From sequence record MH791414.1: a stretch of DNA of 64,000 nucleotides. One strand, 5' to 3'. Below the pieces are notes generated by a model. It did not search any database. It was not told where the DNA came from and saw only the letters and a list, made by a program, of their open reading frames with translations. Below, piece after piece: positions 2,534 to 61,177 of the stretch. The position numbers were made by a program, and so were the translations under genes. Each line of letters begins with the position of its first letter. Within the stretch, counting starts at the first letter, position 1.

Positions 2534-2840
2534 TTTCCTTCAACTTCTTGGCTAGGAATCCGGCTAGACGCTTACGAGATTCGCCATACATACCGGTATA
2601 TTTGCTTCGATTGGAATGATAAGCACCCCTAGCACAACCATCTTCATCATCAACGGGATAATCTTCAAACCCACTAAATTCATCCCATTGATGAAAATAA
2701 AAATAGAAAATTTCTTTTACTTTATGATATTCGATACCACACATGAAATACCAATCTTGGTTACAAAGACCAATATCTTTAGCCCAAACTGATGGGAATT
2801 CCCCTTGGCTTACCATTTCAAGAACTTCATAAACTTTCAT
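2520..2840 (-). CDS. hypothetical protein, paralog of 2147..2533
   Basis: same shared motifs; coupled to the primase stop. Confidence 0.75.
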   Translation of the reverse strand: MKVYEVLEMVSQGEFPSVWAKDIGLCNQDWYFMCGIEYHKVKEIFYFYFHQWDEFSGFEDYPVDDEDGCARGAYHSNRSKYTGMYGESRKRLAGFLAKKLKENENV

Positions 2841-3901
2841 TATTTTAACCTCTTATGTCCATATTTTCGCCATTTACTTAATGCATCAACCGCTCGTATT
2901 CCACTATATGTGTTTTCTCTAATAAATTCCATTATTTCGTCAACGGTTGCACCTTCGTCTTTGATCATATCATTGATATCCTTTGAAGTCCAAGGACAAT
3001 CAATCCATATGACGATTTTTTCGGATGCGTTTATCAGTTTTTCCATTCTCTTTATTGTATCATAAGATCTAGGTTCGTTGTCAAGTACCCATACCCGATT
3101 ATTTTCAAATGGAGAGTCTTCTAATGCCATAGAACCACCCACAATAGCACAAGCGTTTGGGATAAACACACTATCAATAGGACCTTCTAACATATACACG
3201 GTTTTTGATTCGTCAACCCGTTCCATTCCATAAACCTTTGACGCATCATCATCTGCCTTGATGGTCAGATATCGTTGACTTTTTTCAACGTTGGTCAATG
3301 CCCGTCCTTGAATAGAAGAATATGTACCATCTTTATTATAAATAGGTATTACCAACCGATATTCTTTTTTGTCATCGTATTTATAAGTTTCTGGTTTAAT
3401 ATTATTTGCTAACTTCTTCCATTCATCAGTAAAAAAGAAAAGTTTGTGTTTGTCTTTCGGGATCTTGCGACGATTTACCCAACCAATAACCGGGTGTGTT
3501 TCTGGCAGATCTGCAAGACAAATGGAATATGGTATTTCATTTTTCTTAATCTGTTCTTTCTTTACTTCTTTTTTCTTTTCTTGGTAAACAGGTTCCCAAG
3601 AATCCTCTTTGTTTGCATATTTTTCTTTAGCAAACTCTCTATACATTTCCGGTTCGTATTCGTATAGGTAATTTGTCAGTTTCATGTTTCTGCCGCAGTT
3701 ATAGCAGCCAAATCGAACATGACCCTCTGATTCATAAAACCAACCACGAGTTTTGTGATATTGTGTTGCACTATCACCACATATAGGACACCGGAAGTTA
3801 TATTTAACTTCAACACCGCGAGAGTGGTCGGTTGTTAGTTCCATCCTATAAGAGAGCATGGTTGCAAACTGTCTCTCGATTATAATTTGGTTAATCATCA
3901 T
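2840..3901 (-). CDS. 61: DNA primase gp61
   Basis: Zn finger CPICGD...CYNC; TOPRIM EGPIDS and DNEPR motifs. Confidence 0.96.
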   Translation of the reverse strand: MMINQIIIERQFATMLSYRMELTTDHSRGVEVKYNFRCPICGDSATQYHKTRGWFYESEGHVRFGCYNCGRNMKLTNYLYEYEPEMYREFAKEKYANKEDSWEPVYQEKKKEVKKEQIKKNEIPYSICLADLPETHPVIGWVNRRKIPKDKHKLFFFTDEWKKLANNIKPETYKYDDKKEYRLVIPIYNKDGTYSSIQGRALTNVEKSQRYLTIKADDDASKVYGMERVDESKTVYMLEGPIDSVFIPNACAIVGGSMALEDSPFENNRVWVLDNEPRSYDTIKRMEKLINASEKIVIWIDCPWTSKDINDMIKDEGATVDEIMEFIRENTYSGIRAVDALSKWRKYGHKRLK

Positions 3902-3922: not shown

Positions 3923-3952
3923 ATTATATCACACCTATTTGGAAAAAGTAAA
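3923..3952 (-). promoter_or_regulatory. sigma70-type early promoter for primase
   Basis: TTTACT ... TGATATAAT (extended -10) on the minus strand, overlapping a terminator. Confidence 0.65.
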
Positions 3953-3972
3953 GCCCCTTTCGGGGCTTTTTT
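3949..3972. terminator. intrinsic terminator hairpin
   Basis: aaagcccc-tttc-ggggctttttt. Confidence 0.75.
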
Positions 3973-4420
3973 AAGACTTCAAAGTCTTTTCTATTTTACG
4001 TCTTTTCTTAACACCTAACGAAGCAGGACCTTTATCTACAATATCACCAGACTTGACACCAGAAGCAATATTAGTTGGATCGCCATCTGCATCCCCAGCT
4101 ACCATTGCTTCATATAAAGCCTCTATAGACTGCTCTGGCTGTCCGTAGCGTTCGGTAAGGGCATTGTATCCCGCCTTAGCCGCAAACAGATTAGCGGCTG
4201 TCTGACCACCGTATTTTTGCAATCCCTGTTTTAGTGTCCGGATTGTAGAATGAAAAGATGTATAAGCAGACTTTTCCCTAACTGTATCGGGTCGTTTGAT
4301 GAGGTTACCTTGATCGTCAATTAGCCCCAATTTACAAGCTTCCCAATTCCTGAAGGGTTTTCTTATTAAGTCTATCATACGTGCAGCGTATACCGCATCC
4401 ATAACCCTTTTGATTGACAT
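3971..4420 (-). CDS. 61.1: gp61.1-like protein whose C-terminus resembles the mature capsid N-arm
   Basis: lies between 41 and 61; MVAGD...IASG..SG...KGP tail typical of 61.1; CTAAATA at 4457..4463 upstream. Confidence 0.75.
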   Translation of the reverse strand: MSIKRVMDAVYAARMIDLIRKPFRNWEACKLGLIDDQGNLIKRPDTVREKSAYTSFHSTIRTLKQGLQKYGGQTAANLFAAKAGYNALTERYGQPEQSIEALYEAMVAGDADGDPTNIASGVKSGDIVDKGPASLGVKKRRKIEKTLKS

Positions 4421-4459
4421 ATATTTTTCCTTTTAAAAAGGGGATTACCCCCTATTTAT

Positions 4460-6028
4460 TTAGTCATCCCAAGGTGCAGAATCTTCATCGATCATCCCGG
4501 CGATATCTTCGTTAAAATCGATTTGGACCTTACTTAGATTGCGTTTGAACAGAACCGGTCCCAGTGGTTTGGTATCGATAATGTCGGCGATTTCTGGCTC
4601 TATTTCAACAGCCACCGAAGTCACATCATCACCCTTACGAACAACGATAGAGTCGGCGCTAATATCCGAGCGTTCTTCTAGATCTTTTCTCTCGTAAACA
4701 ACCGTATATGGTGCAGTATCATCAAGATCTGACCAACGCATTTTACCCTTTTCAACCACCATACAGAATTTGTTATGGGTGTTGATATCACCATATCGGG
4801 ACTTCAATTGTTTGAACAATTGCTGACCAAGGGAGATAAGGTCTTCGTCTTCGGAAATCGCCAATACGAAATCGCAACCATGAAGGAGAGCATACGAATC
4901 TGCAATGTCGGCTTTGTCAATTTCAAGACTACCAGATGACCCACGGTTTGTTTGAGCACCGGACCACGCAACGATTTTCTTTTCAATTGCCAAACCACGG
5001 ACTTCCTCGGAAATCGCTTTGATGAAGGAATATGAATTGTCAGAAAACTTCATCCGAGACGAAGCCATGATACCAAGATAGTCTACCATGATAACATCAG
5101 GTTTAAAACCCTTTTTCATCTCCAATTCATCCATCAGGTTTCTGATGTGATTTACGTTGGCTCCCGAAGTAGGAAATTGTTTAACAAACAATTTACCAAG
5201 TTTTTTGCCAAGAACCTTTTTATTAAAACGGTTCATGAACTCGGATTTTTGAACCAGACCACTATCCAGATCATCGAGAGAAATATCCATCAGGTTAGCG
5301 TCAATACGTTTACCTACGGTTTCTTCGCTCATCTCAAACGATACATATAGGACGTTAAGTCCGAGCTGCAAATATTCAGTTGCAAGGTGACACAAACCGA
5401 TAGACTTACCAACACCAGTACCGGCAAGAATAACGTTCAACGTACCCAGTTCGACCCCACCTTTCGTAATCCGGTTTAACATATGATTTAGGAAAGGGAT
5501 CTTGTTTGTTTTCTTATTATAGGACTCCCAGCGATCTTCTGCTTGTGCCATATAATCATGACCAATGTCAAAAGTAAATCCAACTGACAAGGCAGTTTTC
5601 ATAATTTCTGGAATAGCGCCGATATCCTTTATTTTCTTGTCTTGCTCGTCAAGGGGCTTAGAAAAGTTTTCTCTAATTTGAATACATTCGGAAATAGCGA
5701 TATCCATAGCTCTTTCCTGACAGAACTTTTCTGTTTCCTCAACCAACCATTTAGGATCTTCCGGAATTTGTTCAATTCTGGAAATCAATACCTTACTTTG
5801 GTCATATTCTACCTGACTAATATTTTGTTTCTTTTCAATCATTACACCCAGCGCATTAACGGAAGGTGCTTTATTATGCTTTTTTGCATATTCATGGATC
5901 ATCTCGAATGCAATTCGATATGGACCCCTAGCAAAGTATTCAGGTTTCAAAAATGGATATACTTTACCAAAAAATTCGCTGTTATAGACCAGATTATTAA
6001 TAATGATCTGGGACATACTGACACTCAT
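4460..6028 (-). CDS. 41: replicative helicase gp41
   Basis: Walker A AGTGVGKS, VDYLGIM, QTNR and KSRYGD motifs; start at ATG 6028 behind GAGG. Confidence 0.97.
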   Translation of the reverse strand: MSVSMSQIIINNLVYNSEFFGKVYPFLKPEYFARGPYRIAFEMIHEYAKKHNKAPSVNALGVMIEKKQNISQVEYDQSKVLISRIEQIPEDPKWLVEETEKFCQERAMDIAISECIQIRENFSKPLDEQDKKIKDIGAIPEIMKTALSVGFTFDIGHDYMAQAEDRWESYNKKTNKIPFLNHMLNRITKGGVELGTLNVILAGTGVGKSIGLCHLATEYLQLGLNVLYVSFEMSEETVGKRIDANLMDISLDDLDSGLVQKSEFMNRFNKKVLGKKLGKLFVKQFPTSGANVNHIRNLMDELEMKKGFKPDVIMVDYLGIMASSRMKFSDNSYSFIKAISEEVRGLAIEKKIVAWSGAQTNRGSSGSLEIDKADIADSYALLHGCDFVLAISEDEDLISLGQQLFKQLKSRYGDINTHNKFCMVVEKGKMRWSDLDDTAPYTVVYERKDLEERSDISADSIVVRKGDDVTSVAVEIEPEIADIIDTKPLGPVLFKRNLSKVQIDFNEDIAGMIDEDSAPWDD

Positions 6029-6052
6029 AAAAATCCTCTTATCTAACGAAAA

Positions 6053-6088
6053 CACCCACGTTTCAAATTTTGGTTCGGAACGTGGGTG
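6053..6088 (-). terminator. 10-bp stem hairpin in the gp41 leader
   Basis: cacccacgtt...aacgtgggtg, followed by TTTT on the minus strand. Confidence 0.55.
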
Positions 6089-29126: not shown

Positions 29127-29168
29127 CAATACCCTAAATAAATGTATATTTAGAATATTGAGGAAATT

Positions 29169-47800: not shown

Positions 47801-47898
47801 ATTCTCACTGTGTTTAAAATTTGTCATATATGATTATTTAGGGAACTCTAAATAAATTGGAGGGGATGCATTTTCCCTCTTGTGTAGGGAGAATAAAA

Positions 47899-54025: not shown

Positions 54026-54237
54026 TATTTCATAAGAGCTTTTATAAATCGCTCTTGATCGCTTTTAGGGATTGAGTTTAAATACTCTTTAGTTCTTGAT
54101 AACTCAGAGTCAAAACGAAATTTATTATCCTTAACTTTTTGTTCAAAGATCCGCTTCTGTGTTTCGTCTGGACTGGAATTAATAAGTTCTGCACATAGTT
54201 TAGTTAAATCACTATCCCATACTGTCATACCTGTCAT
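54025..54237 (-). CDS. hypothetical protein coupled to 24
   Basis: ATGA overlap with the gp24 stop. Confidence 0.6.
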   Translation of the reverse strand: MTGMTVWDSDLTKLCAELINSSPDETQKRIFEQKVKDNKFRFDSELSRTKEYLNSIPKSDQERFIKALMK

Positions 54238-55466
54238 TGTTGATAATCCTGCATTTCTACAATACACATCCGGGCCAGCTGAGATTTATTCGCAGCACCC
54301 ACCCAATCTTCACCATCATAAACTTTTGCTGGGTCCGCATCGATTTTTGTAAAATCTGGGGAGCAGCTAAGAGCGTATCGGTTGATGATCCCGATCACAG
54401 GTTGTAATGCTTGTGGGTCAGACGCAACCATAAACGTCCCTGCTTCGTCTTCTTCGATATATGGACTGTAATATACAGCAGACACTGTATCCATTCCTTC
54501 AAACTGTTTCTTAACACCAACCAACATATAATGAACTGGGGTTTTTGTATCAACTACCAATTGCATTTTTGTACCGATAATTCGGTGTTCGTTGTCAACG
54601 AGTCCAGAGGTCTGTATCAACGCTGCAACGTGCGCACTAGCTAACAGATAGGTTGGCTTAAAGGATGTGTCCAGAGTGATTTGAGCGCCCATACGACACG
54701 CTCTAGCAACCAGATCCCGACCGGCAAAGTATTCTGTAGTAGCTACGTTGTAGGGAACCGCTTTCTTTTCTTTAGTTGCAACTGTTACCAGCTTCATGAT
54801 GATATCGCTGTTAATTTCTTCCGCAATAGCAACAGATAAAAGATCCTCAACAGCAGCATCCCCATCCATATTCATACCGGCTAGGTCTTGAAGCATTTCT
54901 ACTGTAATTTCAGTTCTCAGTTTACGACTTCTAACATGAGCTTTCCATTTATTCATAACATAACGAATATCTTGGATCTCTGTGTCTTCTTGGGTATAAG
55001 GTTGAATTGCATCAACAACAAGACGCAGATCCCCAGTAAATACCTTTTCGTAAGTTTGTTCGAATGTCAATGTACCGAAATCACCAGCTTTAAGAACTTG
55101 GAATACATAACCGTCTTTTCTGAAATAATCCCCTACAGCCATACCGTCAGCAGGATCGCCAACTTGAGTAGCCATATTAAAATTACCACCATAATTACGG
55201 TTGTCAAGGTTAATATCTCTAATTTGAGAACCGTCTTTACTTACATATTCATATCTAACACCAAAAACGTTAGCTACTGGGTCACGTGTAGGTTGAACGC
55301 CCGCCAACTCATCGTAAATCTTGTTAAAGGTTTTTCTTGTTAGAGATACAAGAGAAGGGCGACCAGATACAATATCATCACTTCCAGATTCCGTAATTAG
55401 GTTTCCAGACATACGAGATTCTTTAATAAGATCCTGTATCTTTTTAGAATATATTTTGTTATTCAT
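54234..55466 (-). CDS. 24: capsid vertex protein gp24
   Basis: GRPSLVSL, QPTRDP...FGVRY and SRKLRTEITVE; late promoter at 55495..55501. Confidence 0.92.
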   Translation of the reverse strand: MNNKIYSKKIQDLIKESRMSGNLITESGSDDIVSGRPSLVSLTRKTFNKIYDELAGVQPTRDPVANVFGVRYEYVSKDGSQIRDINLDNRNYGGNFNMATQVGDPADGMAVGDYFRKDGYVFQVLKAGDFGTLTFEQTYEKVFTGDLRLVVDAIQPYTQEDTEIQDIRYVMNKWKAHVRSRKLRTEITVEMLQDLAGMNMDGDAAVEDLLSVAIAEEINSDIIMKLVTVATKEKKAVPYNVATTEYFAGRDLVARACRMGAQITLDTSFKPTYLLASAHVAALIQTSGLVDNEHRIIGTKMQLVVDTKTPVHYMLVGVKKQFEGMDTVSAVYYSPYIEEDEAGTFMVASDPQALQPVIGIINRYALSCSPDFTKIDADPAKVYDGEDWVGAANKSQLARMCIVEMQDYQQ

Positions 55467-55558: not shown

Positions 55559-57241
55559 TTATGCACCCAGTACACGAACACGACGGTAGAAGGAGTTTTT
55601 ACCGAAGATTGCAGCACCCGGCATACCGGACTTAATCTTCTCAAAGCCCTTGTTCTTAGCGCCATCAGCGAACGGATGGAGTTTCAGACCGTACCGAGTC
55701 TTGAAACCAAGGATGGTTTGGAAGGACTTCGGATCAGTACCACGGAGCGGAGTCAGCGGAACGTATGGGCAGTAGTACAGACCAGCATCCATTTCGGAGC
55801 TACCCTTGTAACCTACAGTGAAATAATCTTCAACAGCGTATTGGTCGATATACACGCGGTATTTGTTAGCCAGAACGCCAGCGAACACGCTTACAGAGGT
55901 ATCTGTGTTCATGGTAGTAGTACCAGCAGCAGCAGGGCTTACCAGTTGGTCACTAGAACCCAGAATTACCGCAACGTTACGGGAACAAACCAAGAAGTTA
56001 CCATTACCACGACCGGTTTGACGACCGATTTCAGCGGCTTCTTTATCGATTTGGGTAACAAGCGCCTTCGCACTTTCACCTTGCCAACGAGCACCACGAA
56101 CATCGTTCGGGTCACCGAAGTTAAACACGCCAGTAGCGCCACCATGTTGGTTAGTCCAACCAGATTTACCGATTTGTGCGGTAGCGTTGATCCACAGGAT
56201 CAGCTCACGGTTGATTTCCAGCATGATTTCGTTAGCCAGAATAGAACTCAGCTCGCTGTCAGCATCCAGACCGTGTACGTTACGCAGATCTTGCGCCAGC
56301 TCGATGGAGTATTGAGCTTTCAGTTGACGGGCTTTCGCTTCAACAACTTGCTTGTCGATTCGGAAACTCATCTCGTTCCATGGGTTATCAGTAGAACCGT
56401 TGAAGTTTTCCTGAAGTTCAGCCATGGAAGTTGCCATACCTTCACCGATTTCAACTGCCAGTTTATCATTGATCAGTTTCTTATAACCAGCGGTTTTTGC
56501 ATCCGGGGCGGTATCAGCAGTATAAGCTTGGATAAACTGAACTACTTTAGTACCAGAACCGGAGTAATTATCAACTTCTTCGTCCAGTTGGAAGCGAGCC
56601 AGATCACCAACAGAATAGGTAGTGGCTTTATCGAAAGCTGGGATCAGCGGTTTGGTTGCACCACGACCGGAGAAGCTTGCATCAGGACCGTACATCGGGT
56701 GGAATGCTTCACGAGCTTGTGCGTCCAGAGCGTCATCACCATAGATTGCACGAAGGGTGAACACTTGACCAGTAGAGTTAACCATCGGCTGAACACCACA
56801 GATATCAAATGCAATCAGGTTAGCAATTGCACGACGAGCCAGACCCATAACAGCCGGACCTACAGTGGTGATGTTACCAGAAGCTTCACCAGAGGCGATC
56901 TTCACAGCATCATAACCATGGTCACCAACGATGTTTGCTTCGGTCAGAACGGTTTGCAGTTCGGTATCCGACAGTTCTTTACCTTCAGACAGAGCTTGTT
57001 GTTTAGCTTCGTTGATCAGGGCTTTTGCTTCTTCCAGTTGAGCTTTGCGACCGGCTACGTCAATCATGGAATCGATAACAGATTGGTCGGTATAAACACC
57101 ACCATCGTTAGATTTAATATCGTTGAACTGGTTTTCCATCAGACGGGCAACGATATCTTTGCGCTTCATTGACGCAATTTCCGGTGCACCTTCTTTTTCC
57201 AGCAAAGGCTTCCACTTATTAAGAATAGTAGATTTAGACAT
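55559..57241 (-). CDS. 23: major capsid protein gp23
   Basis: LIAFDICGVQPM, EAFHPMY, WNEMSFRIDKQ, YSIELAQDL and TRYG motifs. Confidence 0.98.
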   Translation of the reverse strand: MSKSTILNKWKPLLEKEGAPEIASMKRKDIVARLMENQFNDIKSNDGGVYTDQSVIDSMIDVAGRKAQLEEAKALINEAKQQALSEGKELSDTELQTVLTEANIVGDHGYDAVKIASGEASGNITTVGPAVMGLARRAIANLIAFDICGVQPMVNSTGQVFTLRAIYGDDALDAQAREAFHPMYGPDASFSGRGATKPLIPAFDKATTYSVGDLARFQLDEEVDNYSGSGTKVVQFIQAYTADTAPDAKTAGYKKLINDKLAVEIGEGMATSMAELQENFNGSTDNPWNEMSFRIDKQVVEAKARQLKAQYSIELAQDLRNVHGLDADSELSSILANEIMLEINRELILWINATAQIGKSGWTNQHGGATGVFNFGDPNDVRGARWQGESAKALVTQIDKEAAEIGRQTGRGNGNFLVCSRNVAVILGSSDQLVSPAAAGTTTMNTDTSVSVFAGVLANKYRVYIDQYAVEDYFTVGYKGSSEMDAGLYYCPYVPLTPLRGTDPKSFQTILGFKTRYGLKLHPFADGAKNKGFEKIKSGMPGAAIFGKNSFYRRVRVLGA

Positions 57242-57364: not shown

Positions 57365-58207
57365 TTACCAGTAAACGTATTGCTTAATGGACTCGTCGAT
57401 TTTGGTGGATTTAGATTTCTTATCTTCGTCTTTATCCTTACCTTTATCGTCTTTGTCTTTGCCTTCACCTTCGTCTTCGGTGTCATCTTTCTTAAAGTTC
57501 AGTTTGTCTTTATCTTCCTGCTCATTAAGATTGGTGGCTTTGGTTTCTACTTTTTGTGAAACCATCTCAACCAAAGAACCAATACGAGATTTGAATGCGT
57601 CAGCATCACCGAAAGTAATTCCCTCGCTCAAAGTCATAACCTGTTCTTGTTGAATAACAGTCAGATCCTTAATAGACTCGGAAAGAATAGATTCACGCTC
57701 TTTACTCTGCAAAGATTCGGTCAGACTAGTATTTTTTGTCAGAAGAGTATTAATCTTCTCGTGTGCTTCGGAAAGTTCGGACTCCATTTCTGCAACAACA
57801 TCGATAGACTCTTCAGGTACATGTACGTTATGTGCAACAAATGCCTCTTTCAGAGTTGCCAACAGACTTTCTGTCATTTGGGACTTAATACCAGATTGGA
57901 TTGCAACTTTGTTGTCTTCCATAAACTGTTCTGTCAGGTGCTCAAAATAACCATCCAGAGTTTGCATCAGTTCTTCGTTTTTCTGGCGAGCAGCTTCTTC
58001 AACCAGTTCATCACTACGAGCGGCTAGTGCTTCGATGTGTGATTCAGCCAGTCGAACGGCTTCGGAACGAACTTTAGCCTGAAAAACATCAGTCAGAGTT
58101 TCCTTAACACTTTCGTTTAATTGAACCCCTTCAAGCGCCTTGCTCAAAGCATCAGATTCAATAGTGATATTTTTAGCTTCACTAAGCAGTTGGTCTTTAA
58201 TAGACAT
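57365..58207 (-). CDS. 22: prohead core scaffold gp22
   Basis: MSIKDQLLSEAK, LAESHI, GIKSQM pattern; synteny. Confidence 0.9.
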   Translation of the reverse strand: MSIKDQLLSEAKNITIESDALSKALEGVQLNESVKETLTDVFQAKVRSEAVRLAESHIEALAARSDELVEEAARQKNEELMQTLDGYFEHLTEQFMEDNKVAIQSGIKSQMTESLLATLKEAFVAHNVHVPEESIDVVAEMESELSEAHEKINTLLTKNTSLTESLQSKERESILSESIKDLTVIQQEQVMTLSEGITFGDADAFKSRIGSLVEMVSQKVETKATNLNEQEDKDKLNFKKDDTEDEGEGKDKDDKGKDKDEDKKSKSTKIDESIKQYVYW

Positions 58208-58231: not shown

Positions 58232-58918
58232 TTAACTTTTTAATGCTTCGATTAAATTCTTAATCGCCTCATCATCTGTATTATTTAGGGGTTCATTTTT
58301 TGACTCATTCATACGATAAGCATTTGTATAAGCACTAGGAGCACTCGGACCCCAAACAACGTCAACACCAACAGTTAGTTTATATCCCTCTTGAACCTCA
58401 TTAAGCCCCTTAGAATTACGTTTTAGAGACCCCAGTCCACGAGAACTAACACCGGGAACCCAACCAGCGCGAATTAAAGCCGCAACTTTATCACCTTCTG
58501 CACCATCACCCTCGACAATTCTAGCCTTACCCCAAACATCATTTCCTTTCCACCATAGTTTTTCAATAACCAAGGCAGCATGTTTAGGATCTGGATAAGA
58601 TCTATTTCCGGGGTGATTAAGTTCACCAATAGATTGTTTGATATTAACTTGCTCTTTTATATATTTATCAACTGCCTTTTCCAAAATCTTTTTCGGATAA
58701 ATCCGACCATTTCCATTTGGAATTTCAGCTTGAAGGAAAATACCCTCTATATACAAATTACCAGTATCTTTATCGTTGTATGATTCAACGAGTAACCCTT
58801 TACCATTACTCTCTGAAACACCTTCAGGACAACCCCAATTTTCAATTAGGAGTTTAACGTCTGATGGTTTTCCCGAATCTCTTCCTTCCCAAGTTTCGTT
58901 TATTGTGTCCATGATCAA
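58232..58918 (-). CDS. 21: prohead protease gp21
   Basis: IEGIFLQAE, NGRIYP, GELNHP, GVSSRGLGS and DVVWGPSAP. Confidence 0.96.
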   Translation of the reverse strand: MIMDTINETWEGRDSGKPSDVKLLIENWGCPEGVSESNGKGLLVESYNDKDTGNLYIEGIFLQAEIPNGNGRIYPKKILEKAVDKYIKEQVNIKQSIGELNHPGNRSYPDPKHAALVIEKLWWKGNDVWGKARIVEGDGAEGDKVAALIRAGWVPGVSSRGLGSLKRNSKGLNEVQEGYKLTVGVDVVWGPSAPSAYTNAYRMNESKNEPLNNTDDEAIKNLIEALKS

Positions 58919-59596: not shown

Positions 59597-61177
59597 TTAA
59601 AAATCGTCTAATCCATCTTCTGGGTTAGGTGGGTTGAAAATAGTAGATTTAGATTCTTCTTCAATCTTTTTAATCTCTTCTTCGATTTGTTGATCTGTCA
59701 TTTTCATAATGTTTTTCATTACGAAATCATTTGAGTAATAACGACCAATAATCTGGTTGTTCATCATATCCCCAACCACACGGATCCGACGCTCTAGAAT
59801 TTCAATATCTTTCAATTCTTCATAATAAGAATCTTTGGCATAAACGATCCGGATATTTTCCTTTTCTAAATCCCAATCCTCTTTAGACATAATACCTTTC
59901 AAGATTAGGTTAGTAATAAGGGGATCATAAAACACCGCATCAAATTGTTTTTGCATACCACGAACAATCTTTGTAAAAAGAAGTTCATCGCGGGATATAT
60001 CACCACCATTCGAGAAAGTAACACCACCAGATTCGGCTGGTAGTCTACTAAGTGGGATTTTCATCGCTTCATAAAGCTTTCTATTAAACCAGCGAACATC
60101 GTCCATCTCACCAAGTGATTGTGCCCCCGGAAGAGTGCTAATTTCGGTAGACGCTTTACCATCTCTACGCATCAACCAGAAATCTTCTGTCATGCTTAGG
60201 TTATTAGATGCAGTTTTTACCTTACCGGTTGAAGTGTCATATATGACCCGATTTTTAAATCCTTGCATGACTTTATTTACATGTTCTGCTGCTTTTTTAG
60301 GTGGTATACCAGCAACATCAATATAGAAAACCCGTCTTTCTGGGGCGCGGGAAACACGATATATAACTAACGCATCCTCAAGCATTTTTAATTGGTTTGC
60401 TGGTTTAATTGCAGCATGGAGATAACCAATTATAGACCGACCATCACAAGATACTTTCCCGCTATGTGCATATGTCATTGCATCACGTGGAATAATGATA
60501 CGGTTGTTATTTGTTGAGTTTAGGTTGTAGTTAATATTCTCTACTCCGGAATATACGAAATATTCTCGATATCCTTTGTATATACCTTCACCCTCTTGGT
60601 TTTCTTTAAAGTTTTCTCTTACAAATTCAACAGCACGTGGATCCAATAAGCGCATTTCTTTAATGCCTTCTTTCGGTTTTTTCGGATCTATCATTTTATG
60701 AAAATAAATTCGACTATCCACATACCATCTACGATATAATCTTTTTCCTTCTTTTTCGAAATGAAGGAGTCTCAATACTTCTGCGAACTCTTCTTGTACA
60801 AGTTTCTTAACTCTATCTCCCCATTTGGTTGAATCCAAATCTAGGGAAACGCAATTTTTTTCATCCTCTTGGACAATAGAATCGTTTACAATCTCATCAA
60901 TCGCATTATCAACTTCGTGATAATTGGTCAACGACCGATATTGGTTTATTAATTGACGAGTGTTTAAAATTTGTGGGTTAGTCCCAAAGGTATACGCTTG
61001 ATATGCTCTTGTAGGAGCGGACGTATCCATTCTATCAATCGAATTAGCACCATCTGGATTATCAGGAGCTGCAAAGCTATCTATTCCAGAGCTTAATTCG
61101 TCTTTTAATTCCTTATCTTCGGATTTCGCCCAAAGCTTTAGGAAATTTGGAATTCCAAAACCATTAGATGTGAACAT
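59597..61177 (-). CDS. 20: portal protein gp20
   Basis: EVDNAIDEIVND, WYVDSRIYFHK, NQLKMLEDA and RAPERRVFYID. Confidence 0.97.
   Translation of the reverse strand: MFTSNGFGIPNFLKLWAKSEDKELKDELSSGIDSFAAPDNPDGANSIDRMDTSAPTRAYQAYTFGTNPQILNTRQLINQYRSLTNYHEVDNAIDEIVNDSIVQEDEKNCVSLDLDSTKWGDRVKKLVQEEFAEVLRLLHFEKEGKRLYRRWYVDSRIYFHKMIDPKKPKEGIKEMRLLDPRAVEFVRENFKENQEGEGIYKGYREYFVYSGVENINYNLNSTNNNRIIIPRDAMTYAHSGKVSCDGRSIIGYLHAAIKPANQLKMLEDALVIYRVSRAPERRVFYIDVAGIPPKKAAEHVNKVMQGFKNRVIYDTSTGKVKTASNNLSMTEDFWLMRRDGKASTEISTLPGAQSLGEMDDVRWFNRKLYEAMKIPLSRLPAESGGVTFSNGGDISRDELLFTKIVRGMQKQFDAVFYDPLITNLILKGIMSKEDWDLEKENIRIVYAKDSYYEELKDIEILERRIRVVGDMMNNQIIGRYYSNDFVMKNIMKMTDQQIEEEIKKIEEESKSTIFNPPNPEDGLDDF

Follow-up and report, generated by a model that had tools for sequence, protein, structure and literature searches.

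A gp61.1-family protein of Aeromonas phage Aswh_1 carries a copy of the N-terminus of the mature major capsid protein and is a putative head-assembly or head-packaged peptide

Introduction

In the unexpanded head of phage T4, residues 66-105 of the mature capsid protein gp23 lie disordered inside the shell, where they probably touch the scaffolding core, and expansion moves them to the outer surface, where an extended N-arm and an N-fist of 25 residues arise from them (PMC9546572, PMC9958956). The N-fist contacts four subunits and helps to build the Soc sites, and it is missing from gp24 (PMC9546572, PMC9958956). Structures of this part of mature gp23 are available (PDB 5VF3, 7VS5, 6UZC and others).

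The internal proteins IPI, IPII and IPIII of T4 are leader-directed, gp21-processed and injected inhibitors of GmrSD-type restriction. Their leader is a capsid targeting sequence, which sends internal proteins and also foreign fusions into the scaffolding core and is removed by gp21 (PMC3012670). A paper of 2025 still puts the number of leader-bearing T4 proteins at three, with nothing but the leader in common, and gp61.1 stands outside this count of internal proteins (PMC12373910). Further comparable components are the internal peptides and core proteins of T4, i.e. gp67, gp68 and fragments of gp22, and the Gol region of gp23, which together with EF-Tu activates the Lit protease.

The consulted papers on the structure of the T4 head do not name gp61.1 and leave only a helical density under mature gp24 unassigned (PMC9546572). 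Our literature search found no account of a function for gp61.1 or GC1491, and no paper that describes a similarity between 61.1 and gp23, a leader on T4 gp61.1 or its relation to the capsid targeting sequence, or clade-level tracking of the gp23 type. Here, the 61.1 gene of a T4-like Aeromonas phage is compared with these systems.

Results

Gene and locus

The window, i.e. the whole stretch of 64,000 nucleotides that was analysed, originates from Aeromonas phage Aswh_1 (MH791414.1; Straboviridae, Ishigurovirus), which is T4-like. The translated 61.1 ORF is 100% identical to that of positions 65971-66420 of the record, where GenBank gives only the label hypothetical protein. The profile of PHROG 2086 covers residues 2-146 and that of PHROG 1823, the 54-position family of T4 gp61.1, covers residues 103-144 (E 5.7e-15). 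By these profile matches, the Aswh_1 gene is a member of the gp61.1 family (PHROG 2086, with PHROG 1823 as its short form). A word-indexed homologue search with 61.1 returned three proteins only, and an IMG/VR scan with the single protein gave no match. BFVD entry A0A411BBR2, a predicted protein of 672 aa, shares 62% identity with 61.1 across 141 columns, and its size fits an annotated read-through of helicase and 61.1 in a related Aeromonas phage. The RB69 RefSeq sequence (L005:1318-1784) splits a long 61.1 into ORF032c and gp61.1, which are annotated separately. In other Mosigvirus genomes, approximately 95% of the long 61.1 is matched unbroken. The split represents either a frameshift or a sequencing error in the reference.

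On the minus strand, the 61.1 ORF is located between the genes for a gp41-type helicase (4460-6055) and a gp61-type primase (2840-3901). The same arrangement on one strand was found in T4, RB69, phi-ST2, K65 and GEC-3S, and a primase gene adjoins 61.1 or lies within a few ORFs of it in Straboviridae, in a pelagiphage and in Sinorhizobium phage phiM12. The head genes are located approximately 52 kb from 61.1 on the same strand (Table 1). Gene 40, which acts in head assembly, sits in the cluster of 61.1 and provides a precedent for a head gene at this place. Two ORFs 3' of the primase gene (2147-2533 and 2520-2840, both on the minus strand; 128 and 106 aa) are paralogues with a common ...IGLCNQDW... 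stretch and resemble a tandem duplication.

Table 1. Features of the 61.1 locus and of the head genes in the window; a slash marks a cleavage position.
Feature	Position	Strand	Evidence or remark
61.1 homologue ASwh1_152, 149 aa	3971..4420	-	ORF list; phrog_2086 E 1e-49, whole length
N-domain, residues 1-98, helical, widespread in T4-superfamily phages	4127..4420	-	AF2 pLDDT 90-98, residues 1-70
Copy of mature gp23 N-terminus, residues 99-138	4007..4126	-	hhalign, PDB profile search, phrog_1823
L-Y-E, residues 102-104, gp21-type hydrophobic-x-Glu site directly before the copied segment	4109..4117	-	sequence
Lys/Arg-rich C-terminal tail, residues 137-149	3974..4012	-	K/R count
Late-promoter-like CTAAATAA at -43, 36 nt before ATG	4456..4463	-	overlaps helicase stop codon
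Weak hairpin then T-run, between helicase and 61.1	4439..4453	-	read from sequence; -9.7 kcal/mol
Strong intrinsic terminator directly 3' of 61.1	3941..3969	-	8-bp stem, 5 G-C pairs, T-run
Sigma-70-like promoter before primase gene	3923..3952	-	TTTACT, 18 nt, TATAAT, extended TG; 10/12 consensus positions
gp23 major capsid protein, 560 aa	55559..57241	-	Pfam Gp23 E 1.6e-119; phrog_138
gp23 residues 97-136, LTE/A site and N-fist/N-arm segment copied by 61.1	56834..56953	-	BLASTP, hhalign, phrog_1823
gp21 prohead protease, presumed processing enzyme	58232..58918	-	Pfam Peptidase_S77 E 1.4e-68
gp22	57365-58207	-	
gp24	54234-55466	-	
Portal	59597-61177	-	

Similarity between 61.1 and gp23

The preliminary description of the window had aligned residues 104-136 of 61.1 (4013-4111) without gaps to residues 101-133 of gp23 (56843-56941), with 16 of 33 positions identical, and both the alignment and the two coordinate ranges proved exact. 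BLASTP of one protein against the other reported 18 identities in 39 positions (E 4e-7 for this single comparison). The best ungapped BLOSUM62 score between both proteins was 80, whereas shuffles of the whole protein gave 31.6 +/- 4.1 (0 of 2000 reached 80) and shuffles restricted to the C-terminal 50 residues, which are rich in Gly, Ala and Asp, gave 28.2 +/- 3.9 (0 of 5000), which places the observed score approximately 12 standard deviations over the shuffles. Profile-profile comparison bore out the match: hhalign of 29 aligned family members against seven gp23 N-termini returned a probability of 98.4% and E 9.9e-15 over 40 columns (residues 99-138 of 61.1 and 97-136 of gp23). Searched against PDB sequences, the 61.1 profile recovered T4 gp23 (E 5.7e-11) and matched the mature chains at residues 2-33, i.e. 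the N-fist and the start of the N-arm, and phrog_1823 also matched gp23 at residues 101-137 (E 1.5e-5). In a six-frame translation of the window, an HMM of the motif detected exactly two copies, located in 61.1 and gp23, and none in gp24. The HK97-fold body of the capsid protein (Pfam Gp23, PF07068) gave no match to 61.1 even at E<=1.

Both segments directly follow an L-x-E sequence, as had been observed earlier (LYE/A in 61.1 and LTE/A in gp23). Among eight phages, positions E1, G6, D7, I15, G18, G22, G28 and P29 are invariant in both families, and each family has its own signature (MVAGDSGG in 61.1 versus EIxGDHGY in gp23). These separately kept signatures point to old paralogues under selection. 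Judged from the combined comparisons, the C-terminal third of 61.1 is a paralogous copy of the gp23 segment with which the mature capsid protein starts. The lack of a known function and of gp61.1 in T4 proteomics would fit a functionless remnant, in which part of gene 23, from its 5' side, was duplicated long ago and became fused to another gene. Such a remnant is barely credible, as the motif is kept with its own signature and with invariant Gly, Asp and Pro positions in 973 phage records and many metagenomic clusters, and in three genera it persists alone as an ORF of 54-58 aa that has a good ribosome-binding site.

Several GenBank homologues of 61.1 (KaAlpha, KLB21, KLB15, Xman and AB1I1M-1) bear the label "major capsid protein" or "capsid component". 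Annotation pipelines had thus already picked up the similarity to the capsid protein, and the labels are annotation transfers, evidently from the 40-residue match alone.

The Gol region, which comprises residues 93-122 of T4 gp23, adjoins the copied segment and overlaps it slightly around a GPxxMG stretch. The Gol core of gp23 (RRAIPNLIAFDICGVQPM) is absent from 61.1; all alignments stop at residue 138-140 of 61.1 (136-137 of gp23), and exactly where the Gol core starts 61.1 turns into its basic tail. Since the similarity ends at this point, a decoy for Lit is unlikely, and this part of the earlier proposal of a decoy for capsid-sensing immunity was not sustained.

Architecture of the 61.1 family

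The AlphaFold model of 61.1, which was computed from an alignment of 66 sequences, has a mean pLDDT of 79.6 and combines a well-predicted helical N-domain (Table 1) with low values (57-70) for the C-terminal 50 residues. When 1.84 billion cluster representatives were searched with the profile, 795 of them matched at E<=1e-3. Most of these cover profile positions 1-80 only and have varied C-termini, and the N-domain is far commoner among the representatives than the gp23-like segment. A PDB fold search with the N-domain found no match (best E 4.4), BFVD returned uncharacterised family members only, Pfam has no family for the N-domain and its PHROGs families carry no assigned function. Kinship of the N-domain with prohead core proteins was rejected, as hhalign against gp22, gp67 and gp68 never gave more than 0.4% probability, and similarity to the gp23 propeptide, gp21, gp40 or IPIII was not found either. 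The idea that T4 61.2 (presumably AdfA) and 61.1 are the parts of one split long protein was also dismissed, as 61.2 has no similarity to the N-domain.

The strict capsid-like motif was present in 25 of the best 150 cluster representatives, including the protein of the window. In every one of the 25, the motif is preceded by a hydrophobic residue at P3 and by Glu at P1, and 5-10 Lys or Arg lie within the next <=20 residues. The layout of the family is a hydrophobic-x-Glu site, a GD...IAxG...G...GP motif and a basic tail. The window protein fits this layout and has 7 Lys or Arg among the 17 residues past the Gly-Pro of the motif (residues 133-149). Longer family members carry additional C-terminal modules behind the capsid-like stretch (P0141, 364 aa; P0010 and P0024, about 250 aa; P0054, 291 aa). 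One of these modules is polynucleotide-kinase/HAD-like and another is a conserved ...FERWSKYLNLED... domain. Such modules would fit an architecture in which an N-domain is combined with cargo.

Short forms and the internal-protein leader

In Tequatrovirus, Jiaodavirus and Krischvirus the N-domain is lost and only the gp23-like segment is kept. T4 gp61.1 consists of 54 residues, in which a leader of 10 residues is followed by the motif and a charged tail. Its leader, MKTFKEFIKE/D, contains an I-x-E site at residues 8-10 and matches those of IPII and IPIII (MKTYQEFIAE/A) and of IPI (MKTFKEF); T4 61.1 and ipI share an identical sequence over their first 22 nt. The short form of a Jiaodavirus begins with MKTFKEFVKLNE/E, and that of a Krischvirus begins with MIGFKQFVEENKLKE/D, a looser leader (MIGFKQF). 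The MKT(Y/F)(Q/K)EF-type leader is thus found in the orthologues of T4 and K65 and, loosely, of GEC-3S. Aswh_1 61.1 begins with MSIKRVMD, and no ORF in the window starts with this leader. The replacement of the N-domain by an internal-protein leader in the short orthologues independently supports, from sequence comparison, a link of 61.1 to the head.

The strict leader pattern occurred nine times in 439 kb of T4-superfamily DNA, namely in the three T4 internal proteins, two 61.1 short forms, two ORFs of HTVC008M at a 61.1-like locus and the UvsW.1 homologues of RB43 and KP27. By this distribution the pattern is far from random, yet not exclusive to proven internal proteins. In the UvsW.1 homologues (RB43, L016:8152-8382 (-); KP27, L018:14127-14360 (-)), the leader ends in Glu and is followed by Ala-Ala, and the C-terminal part of T4 UvsW (L127:2677-4440) contains the similar stretch EFKQFLYE/AS. 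Either the pattern extends beyond capsid targeting, or such targeting may also apply to UvsW.1 as a further candidate.

The short forms also bear on a possible replication accessory, in which the N-domain would work with helicase and primase and the gp23-like tail would be a flexible basic appendage used, for example, in DNA binding. The proximity to primase genes in phages as distant as a pelagiphage and phiM12, the basic tail and the predominance of the N-domain over the gp23-like segment would all be accommodated. We nevertheless consider this explanation decidedly improbable: three genera drop the N-domain, which leaves the capsid-like peptide as the conserved unit there, and a replication role explains neither why a capsid N-terminus should be copied along with its cleavage-type site nor why the copy should follow the gp23 type from clade to clade.

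Expression signals

In Aswh_1, 61.1 looks like a separate transcription unit, because sequence signals place a late-type promoter in front of it and a strong terminator at its end, and the primase gene has a promoter to itself (Table 1). The octamer CTAAATAA (CTAAATA followed by A) also occurs upstream of gp19, gp20, gp22, gp23, gp24 and other ORFs, and CTAAATA was counted 24 times in the window, with 13.3 occurrences expected. At 29134-29153 and 47835-47854, back-to-back CTAAATA sequences on opposite strands each lie upstream of an ORF and are probably divergent late promoters. The terminator directly 3' of 61.1 has a folding energy of -14.4 kcal/mol (z -3.24), and equally good folding was obtained in 0 of 200 shuffles. 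The CTAAATA reported before as a late promoter is present at 4463-4457 (-), but the additional claim that transcription starts within the 5' arm of an intervening terminator could not be established. The hairpin at 4439..4453 is no better than shuffles (z -0.65), the terminator scan calls a site here on the plus strand only, and a transcript starting at 4451 would keep a 4-bp stem of the hairpin (4453-4439). Bypass of a terminator by the late start site was therefore rejected, as this hairpin is too weak.

Phages 133 and Acj9 also have plausible late promoters, TATAAATA and CATAAATA, at -26 and -28. No late promoter was found within 200 nt of 61.1 in T4, RB43, KP27 and phi-ST2, and RB69 has only an imperfect TATAAAT at -56. 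A late promoter is thus missing in four of eight phages and imperfect in another one, which rules it out as a general trait of the family. According to T4 omics data, 61.1 mRNA is early and gp61.1 protein was not detected, and the mRNAs of ipI-III and gene 40 are early while their proteins accumulate late (PMC9697503 supplement). The earlier view that 61.1 is made late therefore holds as a plausible reading for Aswh_1, 133 and Acj9 and is weaker for the phages without a late promoter, T4 with its early mRNA included. Late transcription is neither general in the 61.1 family nor required for a head role, because the products of ipI-III and gene 40 act in heads despite their early mRNA.

The early mRNA of T4 61.1 would also suit a cytoplasmic competitor, i.e. 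a free 61.1 protein that mimics the N-terminus of nascent or unassembled gp23 and blocks or titrates its partner outside the head. This partner could be a factor for folding or assembly or a host sensor that recognises capsid protein, and 61.1 itself would not form part of the head. Consistent with this, many relatives have no late promoter and the start codon of phi-ST2 61.1 overlaps the helicase stop codon; moreover, every characterised T4 protein that bears this leader acts against host defence, and counter-defence by capsid mimicry is conceivable. On balance we regard a competitor as rather unlikely. The early mRNAs of ipI-III and gene 40 weaken the argument from timing, Lit would be an ill-fitting target for a decoy that halts before the Gol core, and neither the universal hydrophobic-x-Glu site nor the internal-protein leader of the short forms would be explained.

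Co-variation with gp23 and marine relatives

Co-variation of 61.1 with gp23 across phages had been suggested earlier as a check. Pairs of 61.1 and gp23 from the same phage were compared for eight Straboviridae (Aswh_1, T4, RB69, Acj9, 133, RB43, KP27 and phi-ST2), and the likeness within own-phage pairs did not significantly exceed that within cross-phage pairs (p 0.10 by identity and 0.15 by BLOSUM, from exhaustive permutation). This pattern looks like an old duplication with parallel constraint rather than ongoing exchange. Own-phage co-variation was thus not significant within the Straboviridae; between clades, the gp23-like segment appears to follow the gp23 type.

In the pelagiphage HTVC008M, gp23 contains ...FLGE/IANVTGSAV..., and an ORF at the 61.1-like locus starts with MKTFTDF and later contains ...ED/IANVAGDGAV... 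followed by a basic stretch, an arrangement that is kept in 13 related metagenomic ORFs. The match is short and reaches p of about 0.003 on the N-terminal parts only; for whole HTVC008M proteins it was not significant (p of about 0.01 for the second pair) and BLASTP did not report it. Other marine gp23 N-termini, taken from 80 fetched loci, mostly read E/AAPTNATGS..., and several marine family members contain ...APTNVTGSAV... or a similar sequence right behind the N-domain. An HMM built from 63 marine gp23 N-arm segments scored >=5 bits in 5 of 125 family members that do not have the N-fist motif, which was equalled by 0 of 40 shuffled sets. By contig name, only two pairs of marine 61.1-like genes and gp23 could be formed (HTVC008M and one contig). 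The contig of marine member P0085 is 1.1 kb long, and gp23 of phiM12 could not be located and is absent from 100-150 kb of its genome. Clade-level tracking of the gp23 type in marine and pelagiphage relatives is suggestive only.

Two HTVC008M ORFs (L013:2200-2613 and L013:3965-5044) with T4-type leader-like N-termini are located on either side of the 61.1-like N-domain gene, and they are the only ORFs with the leader pattern in 105 kb of this genome. Although HTVC008M is only very distantly related to T4, the region is reminiscent of a locus for internal proteins. Directly upstream of the 61.1-like gene, HTVC008M (L013:2623-2988, phrog_407) and phiM12 (L024:2127-2501) have ORFs that look similar, which suggests a two-gene cassette. 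The annotation of HTVC008M shows no gp24-type vertex gene near the head genes, and cyanophage-type T4-likes are not known to have gp24. Filling of the N-fist sites that are vacant in gp24 cannot be a general role of 61.1, because HTVC008M has the gp23-like segment although no gp24-type gene is annotated near its head genes.

Discussion

The gp23-like part of 61.1 is homologous to the N-fist and N-arm of T4 gp23, with the Glu of the cleavage site included. It differs in being free-standing without an HK97-fold body, in having Ser and Gly where gp23 has His and Tyr and Lys where gp23 has Ile, and in ending in a Lys/Arg tail where gp23 runs on into the RRAIPNLIAFD region. As a true copy of the gp23 N-terminus with a cleavage-type site, 61.1 is probably a head-assembly or head-packaged peptide. 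The more specific proposal of a prohead-targeted protein that is cut by gp21 has, in our estimate from sequence, an even chance of being correct. Processing by gp21 is plausible, because the hydrophobic-x-Glu site is present in every motif-bearing representative and a T4-type protease is encoded in the window.

According to this proposal, 61.1 would enter the assembling prohead. In Aswh_1, entry could be mediated by the N-domain, by the gp23-like segment, which in gp23 itself sits within the shell before expansion, probably in contact with the scaffolding core, or by both; T4-type short forms would use their internal-protein-like leader. gp21 would then cut after Glu104, as it does after the equivalent Glu of gp23, and release a basic peptide of approximately 45 residues with an N-terminus of the mature gp23 kind. 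This peptide might join or modulate the N-arm/N-fist contacts during head maturation or, alternatively, stay with the DNA via its basic tail as a small internal peptide.

The internal proteins IPI-III provide the closest functional parallel, as T4 and Jiaodavirus 61.1 share their leader (that of Krischvirus is looser), the genes are small and T4 61.1 mRNA is early. In contrast, Aswh_1 61.1 has a 98-residue N-domain in place of the leader, and its putative mature part is a copy of the capsid protein and not a unique globular inhibitor. As for gp67, gp68 and the gp22 fragments, a small product would be expected from cleavage by gp21 in the prohead. The classical T4 internal peptides are acidic, whereas the product predicted for 61.1 is basic; it also has no sequence similarity to gp22, gp67 and gp68, and its gene lies outside the head cluster. 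Several observations argue against a prohead protein. Whole-cell proteomics of T4 did not detect gp61.1 and the consulted T4 head-structure papers do not mention it, the Aswh_1 protein has no internal-protein-type leader, its N-domain is unlike any core protein, the leader pattern is also found in UvsW.1 homologues and the pelagiphage match is short. The place beside the primase gene, which is kept in very distant phages, could mean a role in replication.

Database labels that name 61.1 proteins major capsid proteins are corrected by the present analysis. Few assembly pathways have been studied as thoroughly as that of the T4 head. The list of T4 prohead components and leader-bearing internal proteins is treated as complete, and 61.1 would add one member to it. 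61.1 would also provide a direct handle on the N-fist and N-arm, the part of the capsid protein that moves from the inside to the outside of the head on expansion and helps to build the Soc sites. A still broader reading, that T4-superfamily phages share a conserved class of peptides delivered via the capsid, each a copy of the mature N-terminus of the phage's own major capsid protein, is in our view distinctly unlikely on the present sequence comparisons. If it were true, gp61.1 would be a fourth leader-bearing and gp21-processed head protein of T4, and the 61.1 N-domain would represent a second kind of capsid-targeting module with varied cargo. The gp23-like peptide would then govern the docking of N-arm and N-fist at expansion or, once injected, blunt a host sensor of the N-arm.
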